In this document: positions 2,644-52,741 of the stretch, piece after piece | Numbering within the stretch: the first letter of the stretch is position 1 | How the letters are laid out: the number at the start of each line of letters is the position of its first letter | Sequence record: PV231354.1 | Strand: one strand, 5' to 3' | Length of the DNA stretch: 64,000 nt | Position numbers and translations under genes: made by a program | Notes under the pieces: model-generated | What the model saw: only the letters and a program-made list of their open reading frames with translations | The model's database searches: none | What the model was told of the DNA's origin: nothing

Positions 2644-3030
2644 ATGCCCAACCCCGGACTCTTTCGCGCCATGGCCAAAGTCGCCAAGCCGGTGATTAAG
2701 GCCTATCACGCCGATTTTGAGATTCACGACGCCAAGGTGATTCACGGCCTAAAGGACGGCGATGTCATCTTGTGGGCGCCGGATGCGCACGGAACGACTC
2801 TTATCGTCCTGGCGCGGGCTGGACGGCCCAACCATCGCGCCGCCGAACACTTCGAAGCCGCCAAGGCCCGCAACGCCCCCGCGTGGTTTGTCGCGTCGCT
2901 GTACCATGACGGCGAGTCGGGTCACTGGAGCCTTTCGCCGGCGCCGGACGCGCCCGAAATCGTCGCCCGCTTCGCCGAACAAGCCGCCCGCGACACCGCC
3001 CCGGACCCGGTGCGCGAGCTACACCTTTAA
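2644..3030 (+). CDS. Hypothetical LTR protein
   Basis: GGAGG SD; bounded by CtrA boxes. Confidence 0.8.
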   Translation: MPNPGLFRAMAKVAKPVIKAYHADFEIHDAKVIHGLKDGDVILWAPDAHGTTLIVLARAGRPNHRAAEHFEAAKARNAPAWFVASLYHDGESGHWSLSPAPDAPEIVARFAEQAARDTAPDPVRELHL

Positions 3031-3092
3031 CCTTTTGTTAAGACTTGACCTCTAAACAGGGGTCAAGTCCAACCCCCTGGAGGCCCTGCCCC

Positions 3093-4339: not shown

Positions 4340-4861
4340 ATGCCGGAATTTATCCTTGACCAGTCGGGCGCGGTTGAACTGCCCGCGCCGACCCCCAACG
4401 CCGCGCCCGCCGCCTATGAATTCGGCGACCTCGACGACTTCACCCAAGGCTATATCGAGGCCCTGTTTTTCACCGAGTCGTCGCCGGCCTTCATGCGCGC
4501 CGAATGGTTCGGCGCCGAGTGTCAAGAGGCCTTGGAGGAAGGCACGGCGGACGGGAACATTCCGGGCGATGTCGGATTCGCCGACCTCGCGCCCGCCACC
4601 CTGGCGCGCATCGTCGCCGATTGCGCCGACTTCCAACGCGACCACGCCGACACCCTGGCTAAGGCCTATGACCACGGCGGCGCGTCGGGCGACTATGACG
4701 ACGCCGCCGCCGGCCGTGATTATTGGTACACCCGCAACGGCCATGGCGTCGGGTTCTGGGATCGCGGACTCGGCGAGATCGGCGAGGCCCTGAGCAAGGC
4801 CGCCCGCTACAGCGAGCAAAACGCCTCTTTCGAGGATGACGAAAAGGTCTATCTCTCTTAA
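4340..4861 (+). CDS. Conserved-type phage hypothetical protein
   Basis: YTRNGHGVGFWDRG motif; GGAG SD; stop lies in CtrA box. Confidence 0.8.
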   Translation: MPEFILDQSGAVELPAPTPNAAPAAYEFGDLDDFTQGYIEALFFTESSPAFMRAEWFGAECQEALEEGTADGNIPGDVGFADLAPATLARIVADCADFQRDHADTLAKAYDHGGASGDYDDAAAGRDYWYTRNGHGVGFWDRGLGEIGEALSKAARYSEQNASFEDDEKVYLS

Positions 4862-48523: not shown

Positions 48524-48831
48524 ACCTCGTGGTGAGGTGAGAACGCCCTCCTCATGCACCGCTTCGGCGGTAAAGTAGGCTCCAGCCGAAGAGATGCGGG
48601 ACCAGGGGACCCCGCCACCACGAACGAAGTGCGCCCCAGGTACGCCTCTGACCGAGAAAGCCCGCTGGCCGTGGGTGAAGTGTATGGTCAAGCGTCTGGG
48701 TCCCCGTCCGCCAGGACCGGCGAAGGCCATATGCGCCGAATTCCTGGACCGGATCGTAGGAGGGGAGCGTTGGCGCCGGCCCAGCAGGGAAGGGTGAAGA
48801 GCCCAGCCGGCAATTTTCTTCAACAACAAGC

Positions 48832-48860
48832 TTGACAGCCGTCGAGTTTCGTGAGAGCCT
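48832..48860 (+). promoter_or_regulatory. Promoter P1 (Glu/Asp tRNA unit)
   Basis: TTGACA-17-GAGCCT; closely similar to P2. Confidence 0.7.
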
Positions 48861-48870
48861 CCTCAACATT

Positions 48871-48933
48871 ATGACGCACCTCCTCACCCGTTACGAACGC
48901 GAGGCCACCGGCCTCGATACCACCACCGCCTAA
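48871..48933 (+). CDS. Putative leader peptide 1 (MTHLLTRYEREATGLDTTTA)
   Basis: Starts just after the predicted TSS; contains GAA, GAG and GAT codons; followed by hairpins, then tRNA-Glu and tRNA-Asp. Confidence 0.5.
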   Translation: MTHLLTRYEREATGLDTTTA

Positions 48934-48965
48934 AAGCGGTTTTGGTCCGAGGCCTCTTGTGATGT

Positions 48966-49447: not shown

Positions 49448-49476
49448 TTGACATCCGTCGGGAGTTGTGAGAGCTT
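49448..49476 (+). promoter_or_regulatory. Promoter P2 (Pro/Thr/Lys/Leu/His/Ala/Ser tRNA operon)
   Basis: TTGACA-17-GAGCTT. Confidence 0.75.
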
Positions 49477-49569
49477 ATGGACTGTCACGGATCACGACAC
49501 TCCTCGGAGTGCAAAAGCGTGATCCTTCGTTTTTCACGGCCGCCAGCGGGTGGCCAGTCGAGAGTTGTC

Positions 49570-49707
49570 ATGTTCGCCTTGTCGCATCTCAGCCTGAGCA
49601 CGAAAGCCGCCTCCCCGGCGACGCTTTCGCTTGCCCTGCTGGCGACGGCCGCGAAGCCCTCGACCAAGCCGACCACCTCGGCCTCGCACTCGACGGAGAC
49701 CCACTAG
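49570..49707 (+). CDS. Attenuator leader peptide 2 (MFALSHLSLSTKAASPATLSLALLATAAKPSTKPTTSASHSTETH)
   Basis: Codons 3-42 encode only A, L, S, H, T, K or P, the seven amino acids of the downstream tRNAs. Confidence 0.85.
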   Translation: MFALSHLSLSTKAASPATLSLALLATAAKPSTKPTTSASHSTETH

Positions 49708-49809
49708 GGCTCTCGTCTCGGGTGCAGGCCTTGGAGCCGCACCCGCTACCTACATCCTGTAGACCTAGCGCAAGGCGGCTCCTCACCAGGGAGACCGCCT
49801 TTTCTTTTT
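49680..49809 (+). terminator. Attenuator 2: alternative hairpins and intrinsic terminator
   Basis: Terminator AAGGCGGCTCC/GGAG(A)CCGCCTT + TTCTTTTT (49772-49809); antiterminator GGAGCCGC (49733-40) pairs with GCGGCTCC (49775-82). Confidence 0.85.
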
Positions 49810-49821
49810 CGCGTTGATCAT

Positions 49822-49897
49822 CGGGGTGTAGCTCAGTCGGTAGAGCGCTCGGTTCGGGACCGAGAGGCCGTGGGTTCGAGTCCCGCCACCCAGACCA
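49822..49897 (+). tRNA. tRNA-Pro(CGG)
   Basis: Loop TT-CGG-GA; CCA end. Confidence 0.9.
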
Positions 49898-49904
49898 ACG
49901 CCAT

Positions 49905-49981
49905 CGGGATGTAGCTCAGTTTGGGAGAGCGCGCGGCTGGGGGCCGCGAGGCCGCAGGTTCAAGTCCTGCCACCCCGACCA
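49905..49981 (+). tRNA. tRNA-Pro(GGG)
   Basis: Loop CT-GGG-GG; CCA end. Confidence 0.9.
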
Positions 49982-49986
49982 ACAAC

Positions 49987-50059
49987 GCTGTTGCGCGTGG
50001 CTTCGCGCCCACCCCTTGGTATGGGGCGGTAGAAGGTTCAATTCCTTCCAGCAGCACCA
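49987..50059 (+). tRNA. tRNA-Thr(GGT)
   Basis: Loop TT-GGT-AT; G1:C72, C2:G71; atypical D arm. Confidence 0.8.
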
Positions 50060-50064
50060 ACAAC

Positions 50065-50134
50065 GCCGATGCCTCTGGGAGGACGCGCCTTTCGTAAGGG
50101 TGCGAGGTGGGTTCAATCCCCACTTTCGGCTCCA
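50065..50134 (+). tRNA. tRNA-Thr(CGT), short D arm
   Basis: Loop TT-CGT-AA; CCTC-TGG-GAGG D hairpin. Confidence 0.8.
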
Positions 50135-50189
50135 TCAAACAGCCTGCGGGCTATATCGGAGATCAAGTTTCATAGCCTCCAGGCTATAT

Positions 50190-50276
50190 GGATGTGTCAC
50201 CTCAGTGGCGAGAGGAACGGGCTCTTAATCCGTCAGCGCAAGCTCACCGTGGGTTCGAGTCCCACCACATCCTCCA
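50190..50276 (+). tRNA. tRNA-Lys(CTT) with long variable arm
   Basis: Loop CT-CTT-AA; AGC-GCAA-GCT extra arm. Confidence 0.85.
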
Positions 50277-50281
50277 ACAAT

Positions 50282-50371
50282 GCACAAGTGACCCGAGCGG
50301 CGAAGGGCGTCGACTTTTAATCGACTAGGCGTCCAGCCTCACCGAGGGTTCGAGTCCCTCCTTGTGCTCCA
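50282..50371 (+). tRNA. tRNA-Lys(TTT) with long variable arm
   Basis: Loop CT-TTT-AA; AGGC-GTCCA-GCCT extra arm. Confidence 0.85.
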
Positions 50372-50374
50372 TGT

Positions 50375-50461
50375 GCGAATGTGGCGGAACTGGTAGACGC
50401 GCCGGCCTCAGGTGCCGGTGCCCTTCGGGGCGTGTGGGTTCGAGTCCCACCTTTCGTACCA
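50375..50461 (+). tRNA. tRNA-Leu(CAG)
   Basis: Class II; loop CT-CAG-GT. Confidence 0.9.
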
Positions 50462-50468
50462 ACGACAT

Positions 50469-50556
50469 GCCTTGCTGGCGGAAGTGGTAGACGCACTGTT
50501 CTCAAAAAGCAGGCCGGGCGACCGGGCTCTGGGTTCGATCCCCAGGTGAGGCACCA
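50469..50556 (+). tRNA. tRNA-Leu(CAA)
   Basis: Class II; loop CT-CAA-AA. Confidence 0.9.
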
Positions 50557-50563
50557 AGACTGA

Positions 50564-50651
50564 TGCGAAGTGGCGGAAACTGGTAGACGCACCGGCATGA
50601 GAGGCCGGCGCCCTTCGGGGCGTGAGGGTTCGAGTCCCTTCTTCGCGACCA
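50564..50651 (+). tRNA. tRNA-Leu(GAG)
   Basis: Class II; loop AT-GAG-AG. Confidence 0.9.
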
Positions 50652-50731
50652 ATGTCCCGATCGGGAAGATTCCAGGCGGCGCGGCGCTCGCGACACCCGG
50701 ATTTTCCCGATCGGGAAGACGACGAGATTAT

Positions 50732-50802
50732 GCTGATCGCCGCTGGGCGGGGAGCGGGTTGTGTCCCCGCTAGGCACGGTTCGATCCCGTGGGTCAGTAC
50801 CA
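50732..50802 (+). tRNA. tRNA-His(GTG), short D arm, A73, no G-1
   Basis: Loop TT-GTG-TC; A73 without G-1 matches the known alphaproteobacterial tRNA-His type. Confidence 0.8.
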
Positions 50803-50807
50803 GATAC

Positions 50808-50878
50808 GGGGTATGCGCAGGGCGCAGGCATCCTTTGCAAGGAAGTCGGGGTGGGTTCGAGTCCCACATACTCCACCA
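50808..50878 (+). tRNA. tRNA-Ala(TGC)
   Basis: G3:U70 pair, A73; loop TT-TGC-AA. Confidence 0.85.
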
Positions 50879-50882
50879 ACAT

Positions 50883-50972
50883 GGAAGGTCAACCGGACAG
50901 GCGCGCCGGGACTGCCTCGAAAGCAGATCGCACTCTCCGGGGTGTGGGGATCGAGACCTCGGCCTTCCTCCA
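50883..50972 (+). tRNA. tRNA-Ser(CGA)
   Basis: Class II; loop CT-CGA-AA. Confidence 0.85.
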
Positions 50973-50976
50973 ATAT

Positions 50977-51066
50977 GGTGAGCGAACGGGACAGGCGTGC
51001 CCGGTCCGCCTGGAAAGCGCGACGCACTCTCCGGGGTGTGGGATTCGAGTTCTCCGCTCACCGCCA
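50977..51066 (+). tRNA. tRNA-Ser(GGA)
   Basis: Class II; loop CT-GGA-AA; G73. Confidence 0.9.
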
Positions 51067-51070
51067 ACAG

Positions 51071-51160
51071 GGTAGGCGAACCGGACAGGCGCGCCGGCGC
51101 CGTTTGCTAAACGAGCGGCACTCTCCGGGGTGTGGGATTCAAGCTCTCCGCCTACCGCCA
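51071..51160 (+). tRNA. tRNA-Ser(GCT)
   Basis: Class II; loop TT-GCT-AA; G73. Confidence 0.9.
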
Positions 51161-51436
51161 TTTTGATGTTGACGCCGGCCAGCACCGATGTCATACGTCA
51201 CGACAGAGCCAACGCCCTCGGCCGGGTTGGTGGATGTGCCGGTTGCATCGCGCCCCGTCGAGCCCTAGTAGCTCTTGCCGTGGAGTTTTCCGCCTCCCTC
51301 CCAGACAAGGAGGCGGACCCCTACATCGCGATCCAGTGATCGTCGGCGACGGGCGCCGTCAGAGCCCCTTGCGCGCGGGAACGCTGCGGAGGGGATCGTC
51401 CCGACCACATTTTTCGACCCACGTTAACTTTTCTTC

Positions 51437-51465
51437 TTGACCTTCCCGAAAACGTAGTGTAGCTT
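51437..51465 (+). promoter_or_regulatory. Promoter P3 (Tyr/Phe/Val/Ile/Gln/Asn/Arg tRNA operon)
   Basis: TTGACC-17-TAGCTT; ATG 8 nt downstream, so a probably leaderless mRNA. Confidence 0.75.
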
Positions 51466-51472
51466 TCCCGTC

Positions 51473-51568
51473 ATGAGCAAGTCGTACCGTCAATTCGTGC
51501 AGATTCAGGTCGTCCGGAATTTCCGGGCGGGCCGTTCGCGCATGGATGATGGCGGGACCTTTATCTAG
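51473..51568 (+). CDS. Attenuator leader peptide 3 (MSKSYRQFVQIQVVRNFRAGRSRMDDGGTFI)
   Basis: Codons 5-18 (TAC CGT CAA TTC GTG CAG ATT CAG GTC GTC CGG AAT TTC CGG) are all read by downstream tRNAs. Confidence 0.85.
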   Translation: MSKSYRQFVQIQVVRNFRAGRSRMDDGGTFI

Positions 51569-51634
51569 GTCCAGACACCTCAACCCAATTCGCGAAAGGC
51601 CCGCCTGGACACCCAGGCGGGCCTTTTTCTTTTT
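51512..51634 (+). terminator. Attenuator 3: 1:2 hairpin, antiterminator and intrinsic terminator
   Basis: Terminator AAAGGCCCGCCTGG-ACAC-CCAGGCGGGCCTTT + TTCTTTTT (51595-51634); leader segment 51523-51540 pairs with 51591-51608. Confidence 0.9.
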
Positions 51635-51691
51635 CCGTTTCGCTGATCCGCAGGAGATCGCAGATGAACAACGGGGGCTAGTCCTCCACAT

Positions 51692-51776
51692 GGATGCTTA
51701 AAGCTGGAGGGCTCCAGCCGGGGGCTGTAAACCCCCTCTCTTCGGAGGAGTGGTTCGATCCCACAAGCATCCACCA
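51692..51776 (+). tRNA. tRNA-Tyr(GTA), atypical D arm
   Basis: Loop CT-GTA-AA; class II arm; GCTGGAG/CTCCAGC extended D stem. Confidence 0.85.
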
Positions 51777-51781
51777 ATCAT

Positions 51782-51857
51782 GGACTCGTAGCTCAGCAGG
51801 TAGAGCGCCGGCTTGAAACCCCGGAGGTCGGAGGTTCGATTCCTCCCGTTTCCACCA
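51782..51857 (+). tRNA. tRNA-Phe(GAA)
   Basis: Loop TT-GAA-AC. Confidence 0.9.
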
Positions 51858-51862
51858 ACAAC

Positions 51863-51938
51863 GCCCGATGAGCCAGATGGGAAGGCACCGCTTTGACATG
51901 GCGGCATTGAGAAGGTTCGATTCCTTCATCAGGCACCA
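51863..51938 (+). tRNA. tRNA-Val(GAC)
   Basis: Loop TT-GAC-AT. Confidence 0.9.
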
Positions 51939-51943
51939 ACCAC

Positions 51944-52019
51944 GCAAGTGTAGCTCAGTTGGTAGAGCAGCGGACCGATAATCCGCCCGTCCCTGGTTCG
52001 AGTCCAGGCATTTGCACCA
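51944..52019 (+). tRNA. tRNA-Ile(GAT), C33
   Basis: Loop CC-GAT-AA. Confidence 0.85.
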
Positions 52020-52026
52020 TTTCTGA

Positions 52027-52102
52027 TGTGGCATAGCTCAGGGGTCAGAGCGCGCGCTTGATAAGCGTGAGGTCGGTGGTTCGAGACCACCTGTCACTAC
52101 CA
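52027..52102 (+). tRNA. tRNA-Ile(GAT)
   Basis: Loop TT-GAT-AA. Confidence 0.9.
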
Positions 52103-52136
52103 ATTCCCAGGCCCGGTGGAGATGCGCCGGTTCTGT

Positions 52137-52210
52137 AGGCGATTAGCTCAATGGTAGAGCAGGGGTGCCACATACCTCGGTCGTAGGTTCGATTCCTACA
52201 TCGCCCACCA
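52137..52210 (+). tRNA. tRNA-Val(CAC), G32/C33
   Basis: Loop GC-CAC-AT; A73. Confidence 0.8.
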
Positions 52211-52216
52211 ACATGT

Positions 52217-52290
52217 TGAGGGTTCGTCTAACGGTAGGACGCCTGGGTCTGGTCCAGGTAATCTAGGTTCGAGTCCTAGCCCCTCATCCA
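52217..52290 (+). tRNA. tRNA-Gln(CTG)
   Basis: Loop GT-CTG-GT. Confidence 0.9.
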
Positions 52291-52296
52291 AGTTGT

Positions 52297-52370
52297 TCTC
52301 GGGTCGTCTAATGGTAAGACATCTGGTTTTGGTCCAGAGGATTGGGGTTCGATTCCTTGGCCGAGAGCCA
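52297..52370 (+). tRNA. tRNA-Gln(TTG)
   Basis: Loop TT-TTG-GT; G73. Confidence 0.9.
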
Positions 52371-52387
52371 ACTGCTTTAGAGTTCAT

Positions 52388-52462
52388 TCCAGTCAATGCA
52401 CAAGGTGTGCAGCGGCACTGTTAATGCCTGTGAGCCCGGTTCGATTCCGGGGTCTGGAGCCA
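52388..52462 (+). tRNA. tRNA-Asn(GTT)
   Basis: Loop CT-GTT-AA; G73. Confidence 0.9.
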
Positions 52463-52487
52463 ACACGCCGGCCAAGGCCGGTCATGC

Positions 52488-52570
52488 GCCCTGGTAACCG
52501 AGGGGGATTACGAATCCCTTAGTCGTAGCAGGAGTTGAAAAGGGTGGTTCGAATCCACTCCAGGGTGCCA
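52488..52570 (+). tRNA. tRNA-Arg(ACG)-like RNA lacking a D arm
   Basis: Acceptor GCCCTGG/CCAGGGT, 7-nt link, loop TT-ACG-AA, long variable region, normal T arm and CCA. Confidence 0.65.
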
Positions 52571-52577
52571 AATCTAT

Positions 52578-52660
52578 AGCGCGCAGGCCGATCAGGATCA
52601 TCGTCAGGCGTCGCCCTCCGAAGGCGAAGAGGCCCGGTTCGAGTCCGGGGCGCGCTGCCA
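52578..52660 (+). tRNA. tRNA-Arg(CCG), enlarged D region
   Basis: Loop CT-CCG-AA; G73. Confidence 0.8.
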
Positions 52661-52663
52661 ACT

Positions 52664-52741
52664 GCGCGGGTAGCTCAACGGAACCAGAGCAGCCGTCTTC
52701 TACACGGTGGGTTGGGGGTTCGAGTCCCTCCCCGTGCGCCA
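52664..52741 (+). tRNA. tRNA-Arg(TCT)
   Basis: Loop CT-TCT-AC; G73. Confidence 0.9.

Follow-up and report, generated by a model that had tools for sequence, protein, structure and literature searches.

A putative leader-peptide attenuator whose control codons mirror the tRNA operon that it precedes in Caulobacter phage RBC8

Leader-peptide attenuators described in enterobacteria include those of trp, his, leu and pheA, as well as multivalent ones, namely the thr leader (Thr and Ile) and the ilvGMEDA and ilvBN leaders (Leu, Val and Ile), and the leu leader uses the rare codon CUA as its sensor. In mycobacteria, leaderless polycysteine short open reading frames (ORFs) attenuate downstream Cys genes, while T-box riboswitches need neither ribosome nor ORF and bind uncharged tRNA themselves. 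Phage-encoded tRNAs are widespread, and the regulation of their expression is little understood. Here, in a 64,000-nucleotide stretch of sequence record PV231354.1 (hereafter, the window), we describe an element at positions 51437-51634 in which a promoter-like site, a 31-codon leader ORF and a three-way RNA switch follow one another, with 12 tRNA genes after them (Table 1). Our analysis makes it highly probable that this element acts as a ribosome-mediated (leader-peptide) transcription attenuator of the phage tRNA operon, answering to seven amino acids at once. The region matches Caulobacter phage RBC8 (PV231354.1, same coordinates) at 100% identity and CcrRogue (Poindextervirus, Dolichocephalovirinae) at 99.8%; RBC8 is of the CcrRogue type.

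One line of evidence for this reading lies in the leader codons. Codons 5-18 encode YRQFVQIQVVRNFR, drawn solely from the seven amino acids that the downstream tRNAs carry (Tyr, Arg, Gln, Phe, Val, Ile and Asn), and all seven occur within this 14-residue control run. By the codon-anticodon table with standard wobble rules, each of the 14 codons is decoded by an operon tRNA and, conversely, 11 of the 12 tRNA genes have a cognate codon in the run, the exception being Arg(TCT); the isoacceptor-level match that a sequence-only reading of this DNA had proposed is therefore borne out by the table. The 14-mer is also the longest Tyr/Arg/Gln/Phe/Val/Ile/Asn run in all six frames of the window (about 128,000 codons), the next reaching 9 residues and being mostly Arg. 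The same reading had roughly estimated the chance of such a run at about 2e-7, with the set taken as one third of codons; from the measured share of these amino acids in RBC8 genes (30.3% of residues), we obtained p^14 = 5.6e-8 per position. Codon choice within the run is likewise unusual, with A- or T-ending codons accounting for 20-53% of it versus 9.6% for these amino acids in phage genes, and with ATT invariant across relatives, though it makes up only 4% of Ile codons in phage genes. An origin from composition alone, as an A/U-rich, unstructured 5' end, was considered and rejected: codons for Lys, Leu, Ser, Thr, His, Asp and Glu would be favoured too and are missing from all 10 versions of the run.

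These versions come from 16 relatives, fetched together with four near-duplicates, that span Poindextervirus, Shapirovirus, Bertelyvirus, Colossusvirus and Brevundimonas phages. All 16 carry an ORF of 31-32 codons at a fixed distance from the promoter-like site, and DNA similarity confined to the leader reaches the Bertelyvirus, Colossusvirus and Brevundimonas phages, which otherwise have next to no DNA similarity to the region apart from some tRNA genes. Among the 11 distinct leader peptides, the control run reads YRQFVRQIQFVRVNR in RB23, YRQFVRQIQVVRNIR in phiCbK, YRQNVQNIRVVRFNR in Bajun, YRQNVQNIRVVRFYR in Kikimora, YRNNVQQIQVVRFNR in Bambus and YRNNVRQIRVRQFN in Colossus, so that both the order and the identity of residues vary (F/N, V/N/F, Q/R, V/R, I/F/N/Y), all within the set. 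Specifically, 13 of at least 16 nonsynonymous events in the run stay in the set, where single-base neighbours would lead one to expect 23% (P = 1.7e-6; P = 3e-5 at a 30% background), and the 13-residue tail of the leader changes into many out-of-set residues. In the close pairs RBC8-BL10, RB23-BL47 and Bambus-Kabachok, the sole change in the control run is synonymous, and Domovoi, Kabachok, RBC57 and BL47 show synonymous changes only, without new peptide variants. Judged from these substitutions, selection acts on membership in the set and not on the peptide sequence. Genes for Tyr, Phe, Val, Ile, Gln, Asn and Arg tRNAs follow the leader in every relative, with Phe moved to the last place in the Bertelyviruses. 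Exact leader and terminator motifs, searched in IMG/VR viral contigs and JGI metagenome contigs, returned known isolates and chance matches in unrelated coding DNA only.

Since the operon set is constant within the Dolichocephalovirinae, co-variation bearing on the RBC8 leader comes from other operons and from a homologue in Erythrobacter phages. RBC8 has a second device of this kind, whose leader is annotated as the hypothetical protein CcrRogue_gp083. P/T/K/L/H/A/S, the amino acids of the 14 tRNAs behind it, account for 42 of the 44 residues that follow Met. In the window, no run from that set is longer than the 40 residues found here (the next has 19), and all 14 tRNAs have a cognate codon in the leader. 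In Bajun, Kikimora, Bambus and Colossus, the homologous leaders have other sequences, with 84-93% of their residues in the set. The only family match of this leader is phrog_12742, of 'unknown function', which was presumably built from such annotated leader ORFs. An automatic terminator/antiterminator finder did not succeed on the second leader in phiCbK, Bajun, Kikimora and Colossus, and in RBC8 it placed the partner of the terminator 5' arm downstream of the ORF, where the alternative structures look more complex.

In the Erythrobacter phages XM05 and vB_EliS-L02 and the Sphingobium phage Lacusarx, tRNAs are grouped differently, and three further leaders match their own groups. Specifically, op1 (sequence from L02) has the leader MFNVIAMNNPAPAIMVPVAMACVEGTRD ahead of Pro, Pro, Met, Val, Ile, Ala and Asn tRNAs (set P/M/V/I/A/N); op2 (from XM05) has MTYGFTKRDRREGDERGFTS ahead of Lys, Lys, Gly, Gly, Asp, Glu, Glu, Arg, Arg and Phe (set K/G/D/E/R/F); and op3 (from Lacusarx) has MFTQTTLLTQCHYWQLLSSSSL ahead of Ser, Tyr, Leu, Leu, Thr, His, Gln, Ser, Cys and Trp (set S/Y/L/T/H/Q/C/W). 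These ORFs are either without annotation or buried within longer annotated ORFs. Across the five leader/operon pairs, every amino acid of the own set is used (7/7, 7/7, 6/6, 6/6 and 8/8), including the rare Cys, Trp, His and Tyr, and, when all leaders are scored against all sets, each scores highest with its own. Phe and Arg codons, for example, stand with Lys, Gly, Asp and Glu codons where those tRNAs are grouped together, and with Tyr, Val, Ile, Gln and Asn codons in RBC8. The leader tails are alike (...VGDGGTAF in XM05 op1, ...MDDGGTFI in RBC8 and ...MGDGGTQI in Bambus); the XM05 op1 leader therefore looks like a homologue of the RBC8 leader with its control codons exchanged to P/M/V/I/A/N. 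The op1 leaders also have strong terminators after the ORF, with a 5' arm able to pair with a segment inside the ORF, and the automatic finder succeeded on both the L02 and the XM05 op1 leaders. A blind scan, which recorded for every gap ahead of a tRNA the longest stretch drawn from the set of the operon downstream, flagged gaps at operon starts in CbK-like, Erythrobacter and Sphingobium phages and almost no internal gaps, and flagged 0 of 16 gaps in the unrelated tRNA-rich phages Stenotrophomonas Moby and Aeromonas TS3. The co-variation of leader codons with tRNA content anticipated by the sequence-only reading is thereby found across the second RBC8 operon and the three operons of XM05, L02 and Lacusarx. 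By genome comparison, the design is conserved over at least seven groups: Poindextervirus, Shapirovirus, Bertelyvirus, Colossusvirus, Brevundimonas phages, Erythrobacter phages and Lacusarxvirus.

The promoter-like site and the 31-residue ORF, both noted earlier from the letters, can be read directly at those positions, and the spacing TTGAC-17-hexamer-7-ATG is retained in all 14 aligned relatives. Because the ATG stands only 7 nucleotides past TAGCTT, we take the leader mRNA to be leaderless. Leaderless mRNAs are frequent in C. crescentus, where 375 have been reported and where they are translated as well as leadered ones (PMC4117421). An E. coli-type promoter scan missed all four TTGAC...GAGCTT-type sites that the region shares, and our promoter calls are therefore based on conservation. 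The leader ORF has no annotation in the RBC8 and CcrRogue records, and most relatives have either nothing or just 'terminator' in this region. The 31-residue peptide has no Pfam or PHROG match at E <= 0.1. Likewise, Rfam 15 gave no T-box or other family above threshold on 51437-51690; its sub-threshold matches there were terminator-like chance hits to ctRNA models (23-28 bits; gathering 45-50) and HepC_CRE (24; gathering 140).

The RNA structures expected of an attenuator were assessed on an alignment (A1) of 14 distinct leaders. The 162-nt leader RNA folds at -79.6 kcal/mol, compared with -51.8 +/- 3.9 for shuffled sequences (z = -7.2; 0 of 200 shuffles), and the alternative folds depend on how much of the RNA is present: leader-only RNA forms the long 1:2 (anti-antiterminator) hairpin and the small stop-codon hairpin in all 14 sequences, RNA that ends at the terminator loop forms the antiterminator helix in all 14, and the full RNA forms 1:2 and the terminator in 13 of 14. 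The 1:2 hairpin, which the sequence-only reading had described as GTCCGG/CCGGGC, is present and conserved, although it is longer than those 6 bp. They are the core of a conserved 9-bp apex (51510-51518 with 51522-51530), in which RNAalifold independently detects three pairs that changed in compensation, and this apex is the tip of a long hairpin. The antiterminator pairs regions 2 and 3 over 18 positions, of which one is G:U and one a mismatch. Nearly all 14 sequences retain a 14-bp core of it (51523-51536 with 51595-51608; alignment columns 54-67 with 133-146), and compensatory changes occur at 5 of 17 tested pairs. Most clearly, CcrSC, CcrBL9 and Bajun share a G-to-A change in the leader (GCG to ACG) that goes with a C-to-T change in the terminator 5' arm, and CcrSC and CcrBL9 have an additional G-to-A change in the 3' arm, a three-way covariation of the leader with both arms. 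The terminator itself has 15 stem pairs by terminator scan, of which 10 are G-C; 99% of its cells in the alignment are paired, with four compensatory pairs, and the records of phiCbK, Swift, Karma and Colossus mark it as a terminator. Finally, a hairpin over the stop codon occurs in all 14 sequences with letters that differ by lineage (GGGAC/GTCCC, GAGGGT/GCCCTC, GTGGGC/GCCCAC). The antiterminator, the stop-codon hairpin and a 14-bp terminator with a U-tract (by our reading, a stem of 14-15 bp) had all been proposed from the sequence alone, together with a search of relatives for compensatory stem changes, which we found in the terminator, the antiterminator and the 1:2 hairpin. The trp/his/pheST-type layout thus stands, with 1:2, 2:3 and 3:4 all conserved.

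[quoted passage not shown] Translation of codons 5-18 would then demand charged Tyr, Arg, Gln, Phe, Val, Ile and Asn tRNAs, the species encoded downstream. Scarcity of any one would stall the ribosome on the control run, masking the 5' half of the 1:2 hairpin; region 2, left free, would pair with region 3 as it emerges, the terminator would be prevented, and read-through into the 12 tRNA genes would follow. When decoding is quick, the ribosome would reach the TAG, which lies in the small hairpin in the middle of the loop between regions 2 and 3, and 1:2 would re-pair behind it; region 3 would then pair with region 4, and transcription would stop at about 51630. The net result would be negative feedback, with the operon on while its own tRNAs are limiting and off once they are supplied. 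Given that the leader codons are nearly all read by tRNAs of the operon, these tRNAs are most likely made only when ribosomes are short of them. We modelled the ribosome as blocking the stretch from -15 to +12 relative to its A site. With the A site at codons 2-15, at least 12 antiterminator pairs are possible; at codons 16-25, region 2 is masked and the antiterminator blocked. In the folding model, a ribosome at codons 11-13 lets the antiterminator compete with the complete terminator even at equilibrium. The occupancy results therefore suggest a classical layout, in which a stall on region 1 gives 2:3 and read-through, and full translation gives 1:2 plus 3:4 and termination.

Several observations weigh against this reading. 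The model would have stalls at codons 16-18 cover region 2, probably favouring termination; the earlier proposal that a stall for lack of any of these charged tRNAs allows the antiterminator to form is accordingly supported for control codons up to 15 and would probably fail for the last three. At equilibrium, the full-length RNA prefers the terminator unless a ribosome sits at codons 11-13, so the switch must be kinetic, which is beyond what folding programs can show. With simple blocking by a ribosome at the stop codon, the antiterminator is still possible, and the model therefore needs either fast re-pairing of regions 1 and 2 or steric exclusion. Further, the control run holds no cognate codon for Arg(TCT); Tyr, Arg ACG and Arg CCG, three of the 12 tRNAs, depart from the canonical form and may be non-functional; throughout the Dolichocephalovirinae this operon keeps one and the same amino-acid set; and the E. 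coli-type consensus scan gives the promoter-like site at 51437-51465 no score. The transcription start, translation of the ORF, stalling, the 3' ends with their termination efficiency, and the physiological signal are likewise all deduced from sequence. On the other side stand the structural hallmarks of leader-peptide attenuators, all of which are present here: a leader ORF on the same strand, a cluster of cognate codons, a terminator, an antiterminator that shares a strand with it, and a 1:2 hairpin that overlaps the codons. In its targets the element departs from the known kind: the downstream genes are only tRNA genes, outside the classical scope of such leaders (genes for amino-acid biosynthesis, transport and aminoacyl-tRNA synthetases).

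Other explanations account for parts of this evidence. The switch could be real and report general translation status, such as ribosome availability or the coupling of the first ribosome to RNA polymerase, with the codon make-up secondary; any slowing of a ribosome on 51485-51517 would indeed free region 2, and a leaderless start ties loading to the availability of 70S ribosomes (PMC4117421). We regard this as improbable, since it leaves unexplained why five leaders contain all the amino acids of their own operons and almost no others, why substitutions stay in the set, and why rare synonymous codons such as ATT are fixed. The conservation of the leader ORF and RNA across genera could instead reflect a small functional protein, or a trans-acting small RNA of about 160 nt released by termination, to which the likeness to the tRNA set would be incidental or secondary. 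Such roles have a precedent in an alphaproteobacterium, where the rnTrpL RNA and the peTrpL peptide of the Sinorhizobium trp attenuator are reported to act in trans, and a strong terminator would free a discrete, highly structured RNA. Yet lineages arrange the residues in different orders and all keep to the set, unlike what a folded or binding peptide would show, the peptide has no protein-family match, and the conserved tail nucleotides are accounted for by pairing with the control region and region 3. A trans role would, moreover, supplement attenuation and not substitute for it, and as a replacement for attenuation we hold it to be very improbable.

A third alternative is that the hairpin and T-tract simply form a constitutive terminator or insulator, that the ORF is a chance frame, and that the tRNAs are transcribed from elsewhere, in line with the several genome records that annotate a 'terminator' alone here and with a promoter that is inferred and unmapped. 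It is hard to reconcile with a conserved, covarying antiterminator, which would be purposeless in a constitutive terminator, with the TTGAC-17-hexamer-7-ATG arrangement upstream of the terminator in all relatives, or with an ORF that is intact in 16 of 16 relatives and whose substitutions are in-set. A control run that is the extreme of the whole window, and a design that recurs ahead of other tRNA operons, leave this explanation with next to no probability.

The 12 genes for Tyr, Phe, Val, Ile, Gln, Asn and Arg tRNAs named in the sequence-only reading were upheld by a combination of ARAGORN, manual reading and homology. At its defaults, ARAGORN finds nine of the 12, with Asn(GTT) labelled 'Ile aat', and a relaxed threshold calls Asn(GTT); Tyr(GTA), Arg(ACG) and Arg(CCG) receive a wrong assignment or none, and their identification is based on manual reading and homology to the tRNAs of relatives. 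Non-canonical tRNAs of both operons escape the ARAGORN defaults, the Rfam tRNA model, or both. Their odd features include a 5-bp D stem in Tyr and, in Arg ACG, a long variable region and the lack of a normal D arm; Arg CCG, Thr CGT and two Lys tRNAs of 87-90 nt are further non-canonical cases. At least five to eight tRNA genes overlooked by annotation pipelines are recognised here; the phiCbK genome paper, for instance, reported Tyr and Thr tRNAs as absent and does not mention a leader or attenuator (PMC3556154). In phiCbK, the gene that is Arg(TCT) in relatives has the anticodon TCC and is annotated as tRNA-Gly, and leader codon 30 is CGG in phiCbK and Ccr10 and AGG in Swift, Ccr5 and RBC57.

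Other features of these tRNA regions are recorded here as observations. Between tRNA-Leu(GAG) and tRNA-His, RBC8 has two copies of the palindrome TCCCGATCGGGA, spaced 50 nt apart; Rogue, BL10 and Bajun share the pair, CcrSC has a single copy, and XM05 has three near the ends of its record, in each case in a tRNA region. Ahead of the tRNA-Glu and tRNA-Asp genes, a conserved promoter is followed by a conserved 20-codon ORF (MTHLLTRYEREATGLDTTTA), whose 3' end supplies the 5' arm of a hairpin that the phiCbK and Swift records label as a terminator; we did not count it as a leader, Glu and Asp codons being 3 of 19 (P = 0.3). The 87-residue ORF (phrog_10343) that precedes the Trp/Gly/Gly operon shows no enrichment for that operon's set, and a skipping-rope RNA (RF02924; 45.8 bits versus a gathering threshold of 36.7) comes directly behind the tRNAs of that operon. 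The first tRNA of the op3 devices, Ser(CGA), stands between the leader ORF and a strong intrinsic terminator, and it may be either part of the attenuator region or constitutively made. In XM05, a gene for an RtcB-like 'tRNA splicing ligase' adjoins the tRNA region. A peptide deformylase gene lies shortly upstream of the leader in the Brevundimonas phages, Colossus and CcrPW.

Table 1. Positions of the leader element, its tRNA operon and other features. Plain numbers refer to the window; numbers after a record handle (L007 and the like) refer to that record.
Feature	Position	Strand	Detail
Promoter-like site	51437-51465	+	TTGACC 51437-51442, 17-nt spacer, TAGCTT 51460-51465; 7 nt to ATG 51473
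Leader ORF	51473-51568	+	31 codons and TAG; encodes MSKSYRQFVQIQVVRNFRAGRSRMDDGGTFI, then stop
Control run, codons 5-18	51485-51526	+	TAC CGT CAA TTC GTG CAG ATT CAG GTC GTC CGG AAT TTC CGG
Anti-antiterminator (1:2) hairpin	51487-51552	+	Control codons 51487-51518 with 51522-51552; minimum-energy fold
Region 2 (antiterminator 5' strand)	51523-51540	+	CCGGGCGGGCCGTTCGCG; partner 51591-51608
Stop-codon hairpin	51555-51572	+	GGACCT/AGGTCC, 51555-51560 with 51567-51572; TAG at 51566-51568
Region 3	51591-51608	+	Common to antiterminator (with 51523-51540) and terminator 5' arm
Intrinsic terminator	51594-51634	+	Stem 51594-51608 with 51613-51627, 4-nt loop, then TTTTTCTTTTT
12-tRNA operon	51692-52741	+	Tyr GTA (~51692-51776), Phe GAA, Val GAC, Ile GAT x2, Val CAC, Gln CTG, Gln TTG, Asn GTT (52388-52462), Arg ACG (~52488-52570), Arg CCG (~52578-52660), Arg TCT (52664-52741)
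Second device	49448-49809	+	Promoter TTGACA 49448-49453, GAGCTT 49471-49476; terminator hairpin 49772-49801, T-tract to 49809
Second leader ORF	49570-49707	+	MFALSHLSLSTKAASPATLSLALLATAAKPSTKPTTSASHSTETH; CcrRogue_gp083
tRNAs behind second leader	49822-51160	+	Pro x2, Thr x2, Lys x2, Leu x3, His, Ala, Ser x3
Non-canonical tRNAs	51692-51776, 52488-52570, 52578-52660, 50063-50134, 50190-50371
Palindrome TCCCGATCGGGA	50655-50666, 50705-50716
Region ahead of Glu/Asp tRNAs	48832-48965		Promoter; ORF 48871-48933; ahead of tRNA-Glu and tRNA-Asp
Skipping-rope RNA	48527-48623	+	RF02924
Further leader ORFs	L041:1418-1504, 3009-3071, 4540-4623; L042:3175-3234, 4502-4570; L039:~154-234
op3 devices	L039:269-420; L041:4656-4810; L042:4605-4740		Ser(CGA) tRNA between leader ORF and terminator
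phiCbK tRNA with anticodon TCC	L007:5177-5254		Annotated tRNA-Gly
phiCbK leaders	JX100813.1: about 51341-51502 and 49540-49770
Peptide deformylase genes	L012:3222-3764; L014:2629-3171; L015:2147-2668; L009:3278-3955

If the attenuator reading holds, it suggests a simple feedback in which phage tRNAs are made until a ribosome can read a short sample of their codons. This would widen classical attenuation to a new class of targets and would raise the number of amino acids sensed from the usual one to three up to six to eight. A broader idea, which we offer tentatively and consider rather doubtful, is that CbK-like phages of Alphaproteobacteria run a codon-resolved 'tRNA homeostat', in which the leader of each tRNA operon lists its own codons and each operon is independently switched on when decoding slows. 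If true, transcription of tRNA genes would here, for the first time in any system, be set directly by decoding capacity, and a phage could also sense the loss of host tRNAs, through host shut-off or tRNA-cleaving defence nucleases, and replace exactly the missing species. Several adjacent sensors with non-overlapping specificities would each serve as an internal control for the others, and a public RNA-seq time course of phiCbK infection exists (PMC10688885). More immediately, annotated 'hypothetical proteins' (CcrRogue_gp083, phrog_12742) and lone 'terminators' can be reinterpreted as putative regulatory leaders, and compact sensors of the supply of particular tRNAs could serve synthetic biology. 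Our searches of the full-text literature agree with the sequence-only reading, which knew of no such case for phage tRNA operons, in finding no prior description of leader-peptide attenuation of tRNA genes; subscription journals were outside their coverage, and an older report is possible.

Among described systems, the nearest relatives of the phage element are the multivalent thr and ilv leaders together with the pheST (pheM) leader. With the thr- and ilv-type attenuators, it shares an ORF of regulatory codons, mutually exclusive 1:2, 2:3 and 3:4 pairings, a terminator before the first structural gene, a response to several amino acids, rare sensor codons and, as proposed for the phage, selection of the antiterminator by a ribosome stalled on region 1. 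It differs in that the phage leaders precede tRNA genes and not genes for biosynthetic enzymes, in covering six to eight amino acids (10-14 isoacceptors) as opposed to one to three, in being leaderless, in belonging to a phage, and in that its products would feed back directly on the sensor by decoding it. The pheST operon of E. coli, with its pheM leader, is likewise a case of leader-peptide control of the translation apparatus through cognate codons, and in C. crescentus a small coding sequence before trpS places a leader ORF ahead of an aminoacyl-tRNA synthetase gene (PMC4117421). Such synthetase leaders attend to one amino acid and target the charging enzyme, whereas the phage leader targets the tRNA itself. 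The mycobacterial polycysteine ORFs are also leaderless, and their codon content, too, signals how much of an amino acid or of its tRNA is available, but they attend to a single amino acid, control chromosomal metabolic genes, and work by an RNA mechanism that is different or less defined. Finally, T-box riboswitches resemble the phage element in sensing the state of specific tRNAs through a terminator/antiterminator switch in the 5' leader of translation-related genes; unlike them, the phage element, which matches no T-box model, would do so through an ORF and the ribosome that reads it.

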